A model generated the notes under the pieces. The model saw nothing but the letters and a program-made list of their open reading frames with translations. It ran no database searches and was not told the origin of the DNA. From the NCBI GenBank assembly GCA_047495785.1, contig JBLDXI010000026.1, forward strand, positions 1,116,001 through 1,180,000: a stretch of DNA of 64,000 bases, in the 5' to 3' direction. Both the position numbers and the translations under genes were made by a program. Positions 16,201-48,091 of this stretch are shown here, one piece after another (position 1 is the stretch's first letter; every line of letters starts with the position of its first letter). This DNA comes from Lepidodermella squamata (lineage: Eukaryota > Animalia > Gastrotricha).

Positions 16201-19200
16201 GCGTAGTCGTTGAAAGGCAGAAATGGGAGAAATTTTGTCCTCATAAGAAGAAGAAGGCGGGCAAGAGAACTGCAACTATCCTCGAGTTAGAGGGCGAGAG
16301 CTATCGCCAAGTTCTGAACCAAGTCCGGCAAGAGCCTATGCCGACCGAGAAGTTGCGGGCGATGCAAATAGCGAGGAGGACGTTAATGAAAAGTTGCAAT
16401 ATAAATTGAGGCAGATATGTGCCATTTCCGTGTCTCATCAAACGCTAAGGAAAATGATTAACCCAGCCATCGTCGTCAATGCGAACTGCTCTCTTTCCCG
16501 TGTCCCGTGAAATTCATCATCCGGGCGGAATTCGAGGAGGGCGAAAAGCTTGGTCAAAAAGAATTCCACTTCGAGCGGATAGGAGAGCCAAACAATTCTT
16601 TATGCGATATCACTAGAAGTTCATTAGAAAACCTGGCCGCATCCTGGCAGATGAATTTAAATGAGCTGCAAATTTAATCGAATATTTCGACATAGCTTTT
16701 TGGGCATTTAAACATCAAGTTGAGGACATAAGATATTTCAGAAGAACCAGATAAAATTAATCCACAGCCGGGGAATTCTTTTTCCATCCGACAGTCCTAT
16801 ATTATCAGATACCATGAAAAATAAAAATGACTGTTAACAAGTGAAAAGTAGGGTGTAGCGAATTTTCGCAAAAAGTGTGCTCACTTGAAGAAAGATTCTT
16901 GGATTCCACGATGTTCTTTTTCCAGTTCTTTTTTTCAGTTTTTCTTGATGATTTTAAATTTTCGAATTTCGGACCTCTAGGAGACTAGGAGAAAACCCTG
17001 AAAAGAGACACTAGCTTGATTCCATCGAAATTTGTGAAAATGTGTGATTTCTCCCCTCAGATTACCCCATAAAATCTCGACAGCGCATAAGAAAATAACG
17101 TCAGAATAAATTACGCGACGAATTATCAATTGATAAATTAAAAAACTTCAAGCACGCATTTTTTCGCTTGTAAACTTTGAAGCCAATTTTCTCAATAAGC
17201 CTGATGAATATCAACCTCTTTTTATCGTTCGACCCCCGTTCATTGACCTTGAAAGTGGCATCAAAATCTCTCGATTTCAAAAATGTCGCTAAATTGTAGT
17301 TCGATTCAAAAATAATATTCAAATTTTACGAATTTCGAGGCAAACTTGGCAAACTATTTTGATTTCAAGTTAGTTTAGTCACAATTTTTTTCTTTCGAAT
17401 GAAATTAGTCATATAATTTTTTTCAAAACATAAAAATAATAAATTCTCACCGTATAGAGCCGTTGCTGTGGAGGTATCTGCTGGGCTGTCGCCGCAGTTT
17501 GAGGTTGCTGAGGCGGCTGTTGCTGTTGTTGCGGTTTATCCTGGCGGTAATTTACCGCCTGCTGTTGCTGAATACCCGGAAAAGCCGGCGCTAAATTGTG
17601 CCGCTCATTACCCGGCACTAGCGACGGGCGATAGCTCTGAGCAATCGAGAAAGGACTAGAAAAATCAACCGACGCCCGCCGCCCGCCGATATCCAGCTGC
17701 GGGGCGAAGGCATTACTCGAAGTTTGAATTCGATCAGGGTAGGGCGGGGCAGAACTGAAATGCTGAGCCCGGTACTGCTGCTGTTGTTGCAAAGGCAACG
17801 CTGGGGCGATTGAAGTGATGGTCGACTGCAAATTCAGCCGCCCGGTAACCAAAGGCTGCTGCGTAAAATTTTGACTCGAAATTTCCATCGATTTCGCAGC
17901 GGTTATGTCAACATTAGGCGGGGGTGAGGATTTTTTCAATGACAACGGCTCTTCATTGCTATTATCATTATCATTCCTAATTGGCGACGCAGTTTTTTCC
18001 TCTAATCTTGGCATTTTCTCTGCGACTTCACTCGACGGCGTTGGTTTCATCAAATTCTGACGACGCTGGGGCTGGGTTGATTTTCGCTTCGATCTCAGCG
18101 CTTGATTAGGCGAGGCCGGGGCTGAATTTGAGCCTGAAAATGCGGCATGGTTTGTTTGAGCTGAAAAGGAGGACGAAGTTGATTCGTTTTGAGGTACGCT
18201 GCTGATGTTCGAGTTATCTGCGTCGAGGCTAGCGGGTTGGTTTTGTTGGGCTTCATCTTCATCGTCATTTTCCGAGTCGGTGTTTGCGGCTTCTCCAGCG
18301 ACTGCAGACTGACTCGTTGATTCAGAGTCGGATTCGATCAAAGATGATTGTTCTCTCTCCGGGGTTTGCTTCATCAAGCCCTGAAAATAATCAAAATTAG
18401 CAATTCAAATGGATGGCGCGATTTTTTTTAATCATGAAAAATAACATTTTGCGAAGCCAAATTTCAGAAATCGTCACCAAGCGAAAACTATTATAGCGTG
18501 TCCCACAAGTTAAACAACTATCTTTAATTTTGCTTTTTGTAAGAATTTCAACAAATTTTTGAAATTAAACATACCGGAGAATTTTCCGTCATTTATCCAC
18601 AATTTTACCGAAGAAATAAAAAAAATTAAAGGGGGAAACCCGAAAAGATAGTAACTGGTTCGGTAATTTTCGGTATTTTACCCGGTTCAAATTTGTCCAG
18701 TTTTTTCCATTCCATTGACAAGTTACAAACTTAATTACTATTCTTAGGGCATCTTTAATTTTTCTAAGATTTTTCTGGCAATGAAATATGACTTCGCCCC
18801 TAATTTTACAGTTTCTGATCTCTTTTCCGTGTTTTTCTTTGTTTAAATAAAGCGAAACGTCGGCGACTTAACATTCTTTCTTGAAGTATCGAGGTAGTCC
18901 GAAATGGTACATCATTCAAATTTAAAAAAAATCTGTTGTCTCTGGTAACGTTTTCTTCAAATTTTATACCAGAAAATCCCTATTCAATTCTCGATCGATT
19001 TGTCAAAACCCGGTCGACAACCGTTAAAATCAATCGCTTCAGTGGAGGTTGAAGTGTTCTTGGCCTAGTGGGGTAACTTGGCTGCATGGCTTTTTCACTT
19101 TTGGCGATGAACCATCCGGCAAAAACTAGGACGATGATTCATCACGCCATGTCCAGGCCAAATATTTGTGCGCATTTTGCACGTTAAAAAATCGGCCAAG

Positions 19201-40586: not shown

Positions 40587-43530
40587 ATGAATCAGATCCG
40601 TTTCGCAATTTTAGCCTGCCTTTTCTTCGCAAGGCCAGCATCGTCGGCGGTAATCCACGATTCATAATATGCTTGCCATTTTCGTCTCTACTGGAATTTT
40701 TAAGGGTGATTGTCAAGTTGGAGAATTTTCTTGCAGAACGACAGGAATATGCTTTCCGGGAGGTTATGTGTACGTCAATCAGTAATAACTCAAGATTTGT
40801 AATTGCTTTCATGATATATCTATTCAGATGTGATGGGGACCGTGATTGCAGTAGGTTCCGCATACTTTGAAATGATTTGGTTTGCACTTATATTTAAAAT
40901 GGCAGCAGACGGAAGTGACGAAGAAAACTGTTCAAGTAGCCGAACTCAAACGACACCAAACACTGTGTGCTGCCTTTTACGTTAAATCCGCCATGTCTAA
41001 TTTCGTAATTCTAGACCCGGCAGACTCTGCAGCCGATCATCACTGCCCCCACTACGGCAGCTACACCAATCAGAGGAGTAAATTGGAAGAGTTGCTTGGC
41101 TTTGTGATTTTTACAATTTCAAATCAACACAGGGAGCTTGCTCATCCACCGAGTTCACTTGCAAATCAAACGGCAAATGCATTTTATCCTTCTATGTGTT
41201 GGTTTATTTATGTGCAAAGCATTTTAGATGAAAGCTTTAACCATTTCTTAGATGCGATGGCGGTCGTCCAGACTGTGGTGAGTTGGATTATGAAGTTGCC
41301 AATATCAGGAAATAGATATTTCGGAATTCAGAGGACGGAAGTGACGAGGCTGACTGCCGGACCACTACATCCCGTTCGACAACAACTGCCACTACCAGTA
41401 CAACTGATCAGGTATATTGCCTATAGAGAAACCCTGAAATATATTAAACAGGTTTTATCGTATTTATTGCAGGTATGAATGAATTCAGGAAGTTTACAAT
41501 AACTATAAAAGAATATTTAGAGTGGCTGTACTTCGGATCAGTTCGCATGTAGATCTAATGGCAAATGCATCCCCGCAAAATATGCGACGATGCGGTGAGG
41601 GAAAGAAGAAAAATGATTTTTCAAAAAACAACCACTTGTGTTTTTATATCGCAATAGTATCGTTTCTCTTCTTCATAAGTCGCAATTACGGAATATATGA
41701 GATTTAGCATTGGAAAATTGGTGAATTAGCTTAGAAGCATAGAATTTGCCGCTCGGAAATGTTCGAAAATACCAGAAACTCTACGTTTAATTCTCGGATT
41801 TTCATCAAAATATATGGCAAGGCAGCAATTATGGCTCTATTTCTGCTATCGGAATGATTAAATCGTGGGTTTTTATTAGGAGCATATTAGCCAGAGATCA
41901 ATTAGATAACAATTTCTGACAATAACATTGAAATAACCCCAATTAGCTACAAAATTGCATTTGAATAATAATAAAAAGCGTTGTTTCTTTAAGGATGCAA
42001 TTTTTCCCTTTTTCTTCTCACCGCATAGTCATTTTGAAGGCTACGTCAAAATCCTTTCAAACCCATAAACTTGGCGATTAGATCTTTCAAAATTATGTTT
42101 AGCCATTGAAACACTGATATTTCAGCTATTTACAATGCTGCAAACTTTTTTGAACACACTGTATTCTTACAGAGAAGGTGCACCGCTAACCATTTCGCGT
42201 GCAGAAAGATTTTTCAATGCATTCCAGTTAGTTATTAGTAAGTATGAAGCGCAAGTATAGCTATAAATGCTCAATCAAAAACTTCTGTGAGCTAGGCGTG
42301 ACAGTGAGCTTGATTGCAGTAAGGAAACCTGCAAAAGGTTATAAAATAGTTAGTTTGGTCTGCTTAAGGTGCGATGTTAATGACGAAACAAAAAGCACAT
42401 GTATTTCCAAAATATTTCCTATAATACTCCAAATCATATAAACATCTCCACGGTTTCTCAAGGACCGACGACAGGAGGTGAGATGGTACAATGAAAAGGA
42501 ACATTTTTATATGAAATGGCATTCAGCCGTCGTGCGGTGATGACGAATTCAGCTGCAAGTCGAATGGATTCTGCATTCCCAGTGATTTTGTGTGAGTCAC
42601 GTTCATCCTTCGCCTACGAGCACTATAATATTCTTTTATCATGATGCTTCAGGTGTGATGACGAAGCCGATTGTGGTAAGAGAAGTCGCGCCTAATTTTT
42701 GGAGGTGATTATTTTAAATTTTCCCTTAAAACTCAGTCGATGGTAGCGACGAAGCCGAATGCGACTCCACAAGCAGGGAGGTAATTTTTCTAGATACACT
42801 TCTACTTCTGAGAAAAAGCTTCATTCCATTTGAGGTAAATAACCCGGATATTTCGTGCGGGAGTCAATTCCGTTGCTCAAGTGGCCAATGCGTACCTGCC
42901 ACATTCGTGTAAGACTGTATCCATAATGTGATCATGATATTTATAACAAGATGAGCGCTTATGCCTTCCCATAGATGCGACGGGGATAGAGATTGTTGTA
43001 AGTTACAAGAATTACTATTAGCCTTTGGAGATAGATGATATATCATATGCTTTTGCAGCTGACGGAAGCGATGAAGCTGGCTGTAAGACAACAACGAGAG
43101 TGGTAAGGAATATCAGCTTTTGTTGAAATAGACTCAAAGTCCTATTATCTTTTTCAGGTGAGCAGGACATCGACCTCGCGAACCGGTTTCTGTAATGGAT
43201 TCACGTGTCGACTATCTGGAGAGTGCATTCTTTCTAACAGTGTGTAAGTCGCCATCTCTCGTTTTAGTTTTACCACGATGAAACTGTCAACCCTATTAAC
43301 TTTGTTTCAGATGCGATGGCAGAGACAATTGCTGTAAGTTGTGCTAACTACTCATGGGTTAATTGTAGATTACGCCACAATTTGCTAGTTGACGGTAGCG
43401 ATGAAGAGCACTGCTCCGCAACAACTACTCAAGTAAAATTCGATTGCTGCATTACGGATTGTTGCATAACTTGAATTTTCAGAGCCCTGCGACGACTTTT
43501 GTATGAGACGACCGATGGAGATAATCGAGG
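40587..43530 (+). pseudogene. Degenerate LDLa-only gene (copy A), tandem duplicate of 45129-48091
   Basis: Colinear with copy B, but the end of module 3 and all of module 4 are replaced by a TE-like insert (~41600-42161). Module 5 has a spliced TA|G stop, Cys->Arg, a 2-nt insertion and a lost donor. The 3' end is approximate. Confidence 0.65.
41600..42161. mobile_element. Tc1/mariner-like relic (only the right terminus is recognisable); a related end lies at ~44520-44725
   Basis: TTTTTGAACACACTG|TA at 42161 and TTTTTAGACACACTG|TA at 44725 with similar upstream sequence; absent from the paralogous copy B. Confidence 0.45.
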
Positions 43531-45128
43531 TTAAAGTCAGCATAATTAATCATCGTATATGCACTTGTCGACCTGAAAGTTGTTATTCATTAGCCGCCGT
43601 GTCTTGAATCAGTGCGCGTTTTGACAAATTAACATGCTTATCTATGAGGTTTGAACATTAAAGATGATTTCGTAATTATTTGTAAACTACAGGCGTGAGA
43701 GTATTTTGGGTTTAGATTAAAGCAACAAACATTAACTGAAACTCTGAATCAATTCCTATGGACTGTTGTTTCTGATCGAATAAGGCCTCTAAACAGGCCG
43801 CCGTAAAATGAGAATGAGCAAAATATTGCAGTAGAAGGTTGACGACCCATTCATGCTAAAAAGGGTGCTACGAAGAGAGTTTTCTTTGGTCATTAAATGC
43901 CATCCCTGCTACGATAAAACAAATGAACTTGCTACGGAACAAATACAGCGTCAAACTAGAAACAAATTGTGTAATACTAATACATAAATTGCTGCTCATT
44001 CTGGCGAACTTTTCCGTTGCTAAACATGAATTTGATAGCTCTAAGCGCCAAGTTTCTGCGGTTGGAAGGACGTTCTGAAATGTCTCTACTGAAATGAGGT
44101 AGATCCGGAATCAGACGTGGCTTGCAGAATGCACATTATCAGGCCCGCCCACGTTACGGCTCTGCGCGCGCTCCTATTGGCCAGCTCATTTTGAACTGTA
44201 ATCATGCATGAACTTGCAAAATGACGAAGTTGTGAAATAAACAAAGAAATGCGCAATTTTGTTAGCCAATAAAGTTATTCTCAAGGAGTTCAATTTTATT
44301 TCTGGCTAATGTTACCAAACTTTCATCGTCCCTAAACAGCGCAAGAAATGCTGCCATTGCCTCTATTTTGACAGTAATTCGAGAACTTCACGAGATTCCG
44401 AGGTAGAGCGTTCCTGGCATTTCCCAACCTTTCAGAGAGGCAAAACTAAATCTTCCTTTAGTTTAATTATTAAATTTTCAAATTTAGTACTCATGTTTTT
44501 ACCGTGATTGCGACTTTGGAAGACGGGAAACAATGTCATTGGCGACTTCAGAAACCTTGTTGTTGTTTTTTGAAATAACTACTTGTCTATTCTTTCTCTG
44601 AATTCTTATAACCACAAATCTCGGCGAATGCAGCTTTCAAAATCATGTTTCAAAACCACGGAAAGATTCGCCAAAATGAGCGAATGGAAGCAATATATTA
44701 TTTTCAAACGTTTTTAGACACACTGTAGAAAGCTGTTTCCAAGAGTTCATTTCGCCGGTCTTGAAATCCTTGAATTCCTGCAAATCCAGTCTGCTAAGAA
44801 TTGCTACGCTGGCCGCAACGACGTAAATTTTTCATTCCACATTAAAATTTGTTCAATAAATGCGGCTTCAAAAATAAAATTGAAGATATTCTCTAAAAAG
44901 GATGTTGATTCATTCTTAAAGCCTTCGTGACTCTATAGTAAGGTTTTAAACTCATGTACTGCTGTAAATTTCCACTGTAGTTTCGTCTGCCACGCCAACA
45001 TGCCTTTTGTGTCGCTGCTCTTCCTATTGTTTCGGAAAAAAAAGATTAAAAAAAGACGTGGTAATATGTTGCCCCTAGTTCCGAAAGTCATCATATTGTG
45101 TATTATTTTGGCTTTCAAACTTCAAGAC

Positions 45129-48091
45129 ATGAATCAGATCCGTTTCGCGATTTTAGGCTGCCTTTTATTTGCTAGGCTAGCATCGGCAGCGGTAATCCAA
45201 GATTCAAATTTGTATTACTATTTTCGTCACTACTGGAAATTTTTAGGGTACCTGTCAAGATGGAGAATTTTCTTGCAGAACAACAGGAATATGCTTTCCG
45301 GGAGGCTATGTGTACGTCTAATAGTAAAATTTTATTGCTTTCATGGAATTCTTTCATATTCAGGTGTGATGGGGACCGAGATTGCAGTAGGTTCTGCAAG
45401 CTTTCAGCATATTTGATGAGAAATTTGATATAATGACAGCTGACGGAAGTGATGAAGAAAACTGTTCAAGTAGCCGAACTCAAACGACATCAACCCCCGT
45501 GTGTTACCTTTAATTTTAAATCCGCCATTTCGAATTTCGTAATTCTAGATTCGGCAGCCGACCTCTACTACCACCACTACATCAACCAGAGGAGTAACTT
45601 GAAAACATTCTCTTGGCTTTGCGATTTTTATAATTTCAAATCAATAGCAGGTAGCCTGCGCATCCACCGAGTTCACTTGCAGGTCAAGCGGCAAATGCAT
45701 TTTATCCCGCTATGTGTTGGTTTATTTATGAGCAAACCATTTTAGATGAAAGCTTACCCCATTTCTTAGATGCGATGGTGGTCGTCCAGACTGTGGTGAG
45801 TTGAATTCTGAAGTTGCTAATACCAGGAAATTGTTATTCGGGGAATTTAGAGGACGGAAGTGATGAAGCGAACTGCCTGACCACTACACCAAGGGCAACA
45901 TCCCGCTCGACAACAACTACCACTACCAGTACTACTACTCGGGTATATTGCCCAGAGAAACTCTCGAAGATATCAAAAATACATTGTATCATATTTATTG
46001 CAGGTATGAATCCGGCTTGAGGATTTTAGCAGTCACTGTAACAGGATATTTATTAGAGTGGCTGTACTCTGGATCAGTTCGCGTGTAGATCTAATGGCAA
46101 ATGCATCCCCGCAAAATATAGGTATGTAAGGCTATTTTTGGTGAAAAACCCAAAATCCTTATTTTCTCGGCAGATGTGACGGAGGACGACCAGATTGTGG
46201 TAAGAAAATAGGCTGCATGCCTGATCTCTACAGATTGATACGGCACTAACTCCTAGATGATGGAAGTGACGAAGCAAGTTGCGGAACATCCACTGCCAGC
46301 ACAGTAATAATTTTTACGCGATTAGCGAAAAACATTACCTGTCCTTTTCAGACTAAACCTGCGGTATGAACGGCGTTTAAACTAGAGAATGGGATAATTT
46401 ACGCTGCTGTAATAGCTTAGCTGCTCGCCCGATCAATTCGCATGCAGAACGACTGGCCAGTGTATACCAGCTCGTTATCAGTAAGTTGTGAGGTCAGTCC
46501 TAATGATTTTGATACGACGTTATTTGAATGAAATAGATGCGATGGAGGCTGGCCTGATTGCCGTAAGACATGAAACTGATATTCCGAAATGGCAACGTAA
46601 ACTTCATTAAATTCAGTCGACGGAAGTGACGAAGCGAACTGTTGGCCATTTCCCTTCTCCACCTCGACTGTAAGCCTTTCATGAGACTTGAAAATACGGA
46701 ATCAGATGTTAATGTTTTAGCCTGGATCGAGATGGGTGATCTCGGTTAGTACGCGTAATTTGCTCCACAAGTGCTGCATGACTTATATTATATTATTCCA
46801 GAGAAGGTGCACCGCTAACCAGTTCGCGTGCACAAGGATTTTTCAATGCATTCCAGCTGATTATTTGTAAGCATCAAGCACAAGTATAGATATCAATGCT
46901 CAATCAAAAACTGTGAACTAGGTGTGACGGTGGGCTTGATTGCAGTAAGCAAAACTTGCGAAAGCTTAAGTAAAATGCGCATGATTATACTGGGGTCTGC
47001 TTAAGGTGATGGTAGTGACGAAACAAATTGCACATCAATTATTTCCGTAATATTTCATGTATAATCCTTCAAATCATATAAACATTCCTCGGTTTCTCAA
47101 GGACCGAAGACAAGAGGTGAGGTGGTAACATGAAAACGAACATTTTTTTCATGAAATAGCATTCAGCCGTCGTGCGGTGATGGCCAATTCAGCTGCAAGT
47201 CGAGTGGATTCTGCATTTCCAGTGAATATGTGTGAGTCACGTTCATCCTTTGCTTATAAGCGCCGTATAATAATTTTCCGTGATGCTTCAGGTGTGATTA
47301 TGATGCCGATTGTCGTAAGAAAAGTCGCGCCTAATTTTTGGAGGCGATAATTAAAACTTTTCCTTAAAACTCAGTCGATGGTAGCGACGAAGCCGAATGC
47401 GACTCCACAAGCAGGGAGGTAAATTTTGTAGATACACTTCTACTTCTGAGAAAAAGCTTCTTTACATTTGAGGTAAATAACCCGGATATTACGTGCGGGA
47501 GTCAATTCCGTTGCTCAAGTGGCCAATGCGTACCTGCTACATTCGTGTAAGACTGTATTCATAACGTGATCATGATATTTATAACAAGATGAGCGCTTAT
47601 ACCTTCCCATAGATGCGACGGGGATAGAGATTGTTGTAAGTTACAAGAATTACCATTAGCCTTTGGAGAACAATGATATAATATGCGCTTTTGCAGATGA
47701 TGGGAGCGACGAAGCTGGCTGTAAGACAACAACGAGAGTGGTAAGGAATATGAGCTTTTGTTGAAATAGACTCAAAGTCCTATTATCTTTTTCAGGTGAG
47801 CAGGACATCGACCTCGCGAACCGGTTTCTGTAATGGATTCACGTGTCGACTATCTGGAGAGTGCATTCTTTCTAACAGTGTGTAAGTCGCCATCTCCCGT
47901 TTTAGTTTTACCACGATAAAACTGTTAACCCTATTAAACCTGTCAATCTTCCTATAGATGTGACGGGGATAGAGATTGTTGTAAGTTACAAGAATTACCA
48001 TTAGCCTTTGGAGAAGAATGATATAATATACGTTTTTGCAGATGATGGAAGCGATGAAGCTGGCTGTACGAGAACTACGAAAATCGGATAG
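45129..48091 (+). CDS. Secreted LDLa-only protein (copy B): signal peptide + 8 LDLa repeats, no protease or TM domain
   Basis: MNQIRFAILGCLLFARLASA followed by eight C-x-F-x-C...C..|CD....DC|.DGSDE..C modules that splice in frame; ends AGCTRTTKIG-stop at 48091. Confidence 0.8.

Follow-up and report, generated by a model that had tools for sequence, protein, structure and literature searches.

The window analysed here is a stretch of 64,000 nucleotides (nt) of genomic sequence from Lepidodermella squamata, a gastrotrich (assembly GCA_047495785.1, contig JBLDXI010000026.1, positions 1,116,001 to 1,180,000 of the forward strand), which carries two paralogous genes for LDLa-module proteins, here referred to as copy A and gene B. 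The intron of gene B at 45943-46056 contains, at its centre, a splice acceptor that directly abuts a splice donor, so that two mini-introns of ordinary size meet at an exon of zero length. This central junction is real and non-random. Its interpretation as the 0-nt remnant of a micro-exon from a linker between two LDLa modules is well supported by the architecture of the gene itself, and the 114 nt of the intron probably, if by a slight balance of the evidence, leave the transcript mainly in two steps.

Anatomy of the 114-nt intron

The intron lies in phase 0, and its removal joins the flanking exons in frame as CGG|AGT. Exon 8 (45851-45942, 92 nt, + strand) comprises the end of LDLa module 2 as well as a Thr-rich linker and ends in phase 0 with CGG, while exon 9 (46057-46121, 65 nt, + strand) begins with AGT and encodes the first half of LDLa module 3 (match to PF00057 with E = 0.0029). 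At 45994-46009, the motif TTTATTGCAG|GTATGA divides the 114 nt into an upstream mini-intron of 61 nt (45943-46003, + strand), which runs from the weak donor GTATAT to the strong acceptor TTTATTGCAG, and a downstream mini-intron of 53 nt (46004-46056, + strand), which runs from the donor GTATGA to the weak acceptor TTTATTAG. Both halves possess intact GT..AG ends and abut each other instead of being nested, and a plausible branch region can be read by eye in each of them, with TGTAAC at 46037-46042 as a candidate branch site in the downstream mini-intron. Zero letters stand between the central AG and the central GT, so that the position holds no coding exon of at least 12 nt such as those found in other linkers. 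An acceptor consensus, with a T-rich tract and YAG, that abuts a GTRNGT-like donor consensus inside an intron is the hallmark of a 0-nt recursive site, and it is what occupies 45994-46009. A sequence-only reading of the window had proposed precisely this layout, i. e. halves of 61 and 53 nt, zero added bases and an in-frame CGG|AGT join, all of which can be read directly from the letters. Its description of the intron as about twice the modal size agrees with the other 27 introns of gene B, which measure 48-76 nt with a median of 55 nt; the 61- and 53-nt halves fall inside this range.

The host gene (45129-48091, + strand) was modelled manually and the model was checked by script. It comprises 29 exons and 28 introns, reads as a single open frame across 45129-48091 and has GT..AG ends at every intron. 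Its predicted product is a secreted protein with a signal peptide and nine LDLa modules that are separated by Thr/Ser-rich linkers. Each module is encoded by three exons, split by a phase-2 and a phase-1 intron, and the linkers carry phase-0 introns. In a PF00057 profile search for which the exons of gene B were taken one at a time, single first-half LDLa exons gave matches with E of 6e-4 to 4e-3, which are under Pfam's own cut-off because each exon represents half a domain.

An embedded small RNA, with the intron serving as a mirtron or as the host of a small nucleolar RNA (snoRNA), was considered as well and rejected in view of the missing fold signal and the missing family match: no stable fold was found for the whole intron, its halves or the corresponding intron of copy A (z from +0.6 to -1.0), and an Rfam search returned no match in the 114 nt.

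Strength of the central sites

Splice sites were scored with position matrices trained on the 27 other introns of gene B, the real sites being scored leave-one-out. The central acceptor (46003) reaches 7.6, which places it in the top quartile of real acceptors (range -0.7 to 11.3), and none of the 159 non-splice AGs of gene B equals this score. The outer acceptor (46056), with 2.2, is located at the low end of the same range. Similarly, the central donor (46004) scores 3.9, or 5.2 once it is joined to exon 8 as CGG|GTATGAAT, and is within the range of real donors, while the outer donor GTATAT (45943) scores 1.9 and lies under all 27 of them. Both types of central site are also in use nearby. 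The same GTATGA hexamer is the RNA-confirmed donor of a 12-nt exon at 46364, 360 nt downstream of the central donor, and a CAG acceptor is likewise RNA-verified as working in the next linker (linker 3).

The junction could conceivably be a chance AGGT in a long intron, for which base composition yields our estimate of about 1 in 10 for the bare tetranucleotide in the middle of 114 nt, or an artefact of an assembly that was generated from amplified DNA of one animal (PMC11660948); introns receive no mention in that paper. Either explanation is highly improbable. When the outer ends of the intron were kept, the interior was shuffled and both halves were required to measure at least 44 nt, a central pair at least this strong was obtained in 90 of 200,000 shuffles (about 5e-4, i. 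e. about 5 of 10,000). Moreover, the extended motif is present in two diverged paralogues, at a linker position that holds micro-exons elsewhere in the gene. As to an artefact, the contigs of a DNA run (X2), which may itself be the source sample of the assembly, show no listed difference at the double intron.

Conservation in copy A

When the entire genome of 121 Mb was searched at the DNA level, only two copies of the gene, A and B, were recovered. Alignment with gene B reveals the same arrangement in copy A, where a double intron at 41412-41520 (+ strand) consists of 41412-41472 (61 nt) and 41473-41520 (48 nt) and where the central acceptor and donor score 8.6 and 3.9, respectively. The junction is embedded in a block of 20 nt that is identical in the two copies (45992-46011, + strand, in B and 41461-41480 in A). 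Eight introns are common to A and B and are 58-91% identical, with 70% for the double intron. The 20-nt block is the longest identical run in any of these eight aligned introns, the remaining interior of the double intron being 58% identical. Five segments alternate along the double intron, its two ends and its centre being conserved and the stretches between them diverged, which is the pattern expected of two introns. In column shuffles of the alignment, p was about 1e-4 when the block had to lie at this position and 3e-3 when a run of 20 could lie anywhere in the intron, values that derive from two paralogues only, one of which is decaying.

Copy A (40587-43470, + strand) indeed looks like a decaying gene. 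The donor after exon 9 is lost, and in place of exons 10-15 there are about 560 nt of unrelated sequence. In addition, the next module contains an in-frame stop (TAT TAG, near 42236-42241) and a Cys to Arg change in its second exon, and the RNA depth is below 1 in the 5' part of the gene, with 0.4-0.8 over the double intron. Half of the A/B comparison may therefore be free of selection. The earlier statement that the motif is conserved in both copies holds for the common layout and the 20-nt block, and it is weakened in that there are only two copies, of which A is decaying.

Between the two copies, at 44000-44199, the depth of the DNA run rises to ~3,600, as compared to ~100 elsewhere, and many loose ends fall into 44128-44198. 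This region looks like the edge of a high-copy repeat.

Evidence from assembled RNA

Run X1 was recognized as RNA because its contigs are spliced, and it was examined in the form of these assembled contigs. They confirm many introns of gene B, all of 51-66 nt, as well as the 12-nt exon at 46352-46363 and the 24-nt exon at 46721-46744. At exon 8, a contig of 155 nt with a depth of 41.4 aligns to 45850-45941. Beyond the aligned part it carries 21 letters on the upstream side and, downstream, 42 that do not belong to the intron. The alignment breaks off at precisely the point at which a GT..AG joint with a single ambiguous G is expected to be reported; a join of exon 8 to 46004 would have extended it through GTAT, which is not the case. 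In the bin 45800-45999, the mean depth is 19.1, the value that the 155-nt contig produces on its own (92 x 41.4 / 200), and therefore no RNA contig covers 45943-45999 in the first half of the intron. Taken with the end of the exon 8 contig at 45941/2, the uncovered first half suggests that the mature mRNA lacks all 114 nt. Exon 9 is covered by RNA contigs that join 46120/1 to 46174. A join of 45942 to 46057 is consistent with these data, the partner of the 45941/2 joint being deduced and not read directly from a contig.

The central sites are strong enough for use and might thus act as occasional alternative sites that give rise to transcripts with premature stops, either as noise or by regulated unproductive splicing, while most transcripts are processed via the outer sites. 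Each half would bring about a stop upon retention. With the second half retained, the frame reads GTA TGA and terminates immediately; retention of the first half (61 nt) causes a frameshift and a stop a few codons into exon 9. However, no contig joins either half to an exon, and coverage of the first half by a contig is ruled out by the depth arithmetic, a weak argument given that contigs drop rare forms. On the whole, we regard occasional use as an improbable explanation of the junction.

The contigs also revealed three features in the vicinity. At the start of exon 6, TAG|CAG forms a tandem acceptor (NAGNAG, 45645-45650, + strand), and an RNA contig begins the exon at 45648, so that the upstream AG was used in that contig. 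At 46121, RNA contigs have T, not G, which would turn Arg into Ile at the exon 9/10 junction; the presence of two contigs, with depths of 31 and about 26, points to two alleles. At 45550, C replaces T in the RNA run and the DNA run alike.

Probable origin from a linker micro-exon

The linkers of gene B differ in the exon that is placed between their introns. Linker 1 consists of two phase-0 introns around a 45-nt exon, and linker 5 of two phase-0 introns around a 15-nt exon. Linker 3 (46304-46415, + strand) is composed of an intron at 46304-46351 (48 nt), the 12-nt exon at 46352-46363 and an intron at 46364-46415 (52 nt). Its total of 112 nt (48 + 12 + 52) is nearly equal to the 114-nt unit, and an RNA contig leaves out 46304-46414 and has ACTAAACCTGC in its place. 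In linker 4 (46670-46801, + strand), the introns at 46670-46720 and 46745-46801 flank the 24-nt exon at 46721-46744, both junctions of which are carried by RNA contigs. Linkers 6 and 7 have one intron each, of 54 or 55 nt. Linker 2 is the intron at 45943-46056 itself, in phase 0, with an exon of 0 nt between halves of 61 and 53 nt. Since linkers 1, 3, 4 and 5 all consist of phase-0 introns around exons of 45, 12, 24 and 15 nt, respectively, the 114-nt unit can be placed at the 0-nt end of this series.

In addition, linker exons differ between the gene copies by in-frame insertions or deletions. Exon 5 measures 45 nt in B vs 63 nt in A (a difference of 18 nt), and exon 8 measures 92 nt vs 80 nt (12 nt). 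The deletion of one whole micro-exon is therefore within the observed range. Both the linker series and the differences between the copies support the earlier proposal that a linker micro-exon shrank to 0 nt. From the architecture of gene B we infer that the central junction is the remnant of such an exon, and this origin is well supported.

Two other origins can be envisaged. The junction may have arisen when part of a linker became intronic, the exon in question having started with a GT that resembled a donor, as exons 23 and 26 of gene B do today. Alternatively, one intron may have been duplicated in tandem to give the two halves; these resemble each other only weakly (z = 3.7 vs 1-3 for unrelated intron pairs), and a comparison with the linker 3 introns revealed no clear similarity (z about 2).

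In the two linkers with a single intron (47419-47473 and 47741-47801, + strand), the downstream exons 23 and 26 carry donor-like GTAAAT and GTGAGC, respectively, directly after the acceptor and in this respect resemble a recursive-splicing exon ('RS-exon'). Both exons are included in RNA contigs of the paralogue. The intron at 47419-47472 has a 9-nt direct repeat, GAGGTAAAT, at both junctions.

Proposed route of removal

The most likely history begins with an in-frame deletion that removed a small exon of the Thr linker but spared the splice sites on both sides of it. The deletion would predate the duplication that generated copies A and B, and it would have produced a zero-length exon between two mini-introns of modal size, at a linker position that elsewhere holds micro-exons of 12-45 nt. 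Splice sites would then most probably be paired across each short intron, i. e. by intron definition. The weak outer donor at 45943 would pair with the strong nearby acceptor at 46003, and the GTATGA donor at 46004 with the acceptor at 46056. Hence, the 114 nt would leave in two consecutive reactions, in either order, with the release of lariats of about 61 and 53 nt. The outcome would be the in-frame CGG|AGT join, and failure of either step would lead to a premature stop through GTA TGA or the frameshift.

U2AF bound at an AG and U1 bound at an adjoining donor overlap, and one site of the AG|GT pair would therefore have to be used first, which would make the reactions consecutive. This situation is not foreign to the genome, as exons of 7, 12 and 24 nt are spliced constitutively, those of 7 nt in neighbouring protease genes. 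Such tiny exons already require the sequential use of closely spaced sites, and because exons of 7-24 nt pose the same crowding problem, a 0-nt exon should need no new machinery. Each inner site surpasses its outer counterpart in strength and lies at the preferred distance from its partner, so that removal in one step requires that both be ignored. For these reasons, two-step removal is modestly favoured as the main route of the 114 nt, with the order and the stepwise nature of the reactions deduced from sequence. A more far-reaching interpretation would be that of a true zero-length exon in a protein-coding gene of an animal, recognized by intron definition alone without a cryptic RS-exon and caught midway on a path from micro-exon via 0-nt exon to a fused single intron. 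We consider the chances of this being correct to be even.

Intron length and removal in one step

Many introns of about 50 nt are also found in myosin genes of the same genome, and strong donor-acceptor pairs in ~290 kb of the genome show a sharp excess at 50-55 nt with almost none elsewhere. Accordingly, 50-55 nt is a preferred size, not a ceiling. A matrix screen for abutting introns in the window plus about 227 kb proved unspecific, with nearly as many 'introns' in the reversed-sequence controls, and real exons that start with GT swamped the zero-length class. Since the matrices barely beat these controls, the length of an intron probably makes up a large part of the signal by which it is recognized. 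One of the myosin genes (contig 7, 18770-19090) contains a candidate 6-nt exon, ACAAAG, between introns of about 72 and about 190 nt.

Several observations weigh against two-step removal. No central AG|GT is present in a myosin intron of about 110 nt (contig 7, ~17703-17812), which belongs to the gene with the candidate 6-nt exon, and adjacent exon matches in myosin genes can be separated by 0.2-1 kb or more. Introns of ~110 nt and ~1 kb without such a site imply that length does not force recursion and that removal of the 114 nt in one step is mechanically possible. A ceiling on intron length as the reason for recursion was thus rejected, and the need for two introns of normal size that the sequence-only reading had implied falls with it. 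Furthermore, the window of 64 kb yielded no second junction of this kind, its other strong AG|GT sites being ordinary exon starts or adjoining a 7-nt exon. The RNA consists of assembled contigs, which are unable to show rare intermediates, and no junction at the central site, intermediate or lariat was seen among them. The site scores depend on only 27 training introns, splice sites being low in information here, and the conservation argument depends on two paralogues, one of them decaying.

These points lend some plausibility to an ordinary 114-nt intron that is removed in one step from 45943 to 46056, with the central AG|GT as an undecayed relic of a lost micro-exon or an intronised linker. 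Introns of this size and far longer ones without an internal AG|GT are tolerated in the genome, the mature RNA would fit a situation in which the outer sites are those that count, and no other case is present in the window. With only two copies, one of which is degenerating, persistence of the motif could reflect recent history instead of selection. Nevertheless, such a route would have to bypass inner sites that score higher than the outer ones, and it leaves the identity of the central 20 nt to be explained while the remaining interior fell to 58%. Overall, one-step removal is possible, but we consider it unlikely.

The consequences of the two routes differ. If the intron is removed in one step, all that is left is a relic motif in an ordinary intron. 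If it is removed in two, gene B would offer a minimal natural substrate of 114 nt on which to ask whether a spliceosome can handle an acceptor and a donor that no exon separates, in the absence of exon definition, as well as a snapshot of the death of a micro-exon and the fusion of two introns into one. The gene model is unaffected either way, since CGG and AGT are joined in frame.

Comparison with known systems

Flies, vertebrates and fission yeast already provide examples of zero-length exons. The sequence-only reading had placed recursive splicing mainly in very long introns, to which zero-length exons are not confined, as illustrated by a 336-nt intron of Schizosaccharomyces pombe (bioRxiv 10.1101/226894). 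The classical examples are the ratchet points of Drosophila genes such as Ubx and kuz, where recursive splicing proceeds through zero-nucleotide exons (bioRxiv 10.1101/006163; PMC8605326). The intron of gene B resembles these in that an acceptor with a T-rich tract stands directly against a donor and that, apparently, nothing of the site is left in the mRNA; likewise, a donor would be regenerated at the upstream exon, which would then be spliced again. In contrast, recursive introns of flies span 11-133 kb (the smallest 11,341 bp) with segments of at least 2.6 kb (10.1101/006163), whereas the whole intron measures 114 nt here, far from the very long introns (>10 kb) of that class. The current view of the sites in flies and mammals is that they depend on exon definition by way of a cryptic RS-exon located downstream (PMC8605326), for which gene B offers no equivalent. 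Only 53 nt follow the central site, and the only further GTs, GTCACT (+29) and GTAACA (+36), would leave an intron of at most 25 nt. Without room for an RS-exon, recognition would have to occur by intron definition.

Stwintrons of filamentous fungi are removed by consecutive standard splicing reactions and have been linked to evolutionary exon loss (PMC6616335, PMC5639578). They share with the gene B unit the short-intron organism, the single intervening sequence and the consecutive reactions, which are proposed here. In a stwintron, however, an internal intron interrupts the donor, branch site or acceptor of an outer one and has to be excised before that element can function, whereas the halves in gene B are complete and abut each other, which sets them apart from this class. 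For human introns under 1 kb, lariat data favour conventional over recursive lariats (PMC10156609). Within gene B itself, the junction is like the linker micro-exons in its position in the repeat, in the phase and sizes of its introns and in the GTATGA donor. It differs from them in having a length of 0, so that only exon 8, once the first reaction has taken place, can supply the donor with an exonic context.

The closest precedent is provided by S. pombe, in which spliceosome profiling uncovered zero-length exons, one of them in the 336-nt intron mentioned above (10.1101/226894). Both cases concern organisms with short introns, an acceptor followed by a donor inside one annotated intron and a mature RNA that lacks, in gene B apparently, the whole intron, and the S. 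pombe site is kept in sister species. Unlike gene B, the yeast example is a non-coding snoRNA host transcript and was shown experimentally, while the present case is sequence-based and concerns an animal protein-coding gene, an intron of 114 nt and a micro-exon origin that can be traced. If a true zero-length exon is recognized here by intron definition alone, 114 nt would become the smallest size known for a recursively spliced intron. Recursive splicing would then follow passively and generally from the death of exons in genomes whose introns are tiny, instead of being an adaptation to long ones. The novelty with respect to flies, vertebrates and fission yeast, if confirmed, would lie in the combination of an animal coding gene, a length of 114 nt, a context of intron definition and a traceable origin from a micro-exon.

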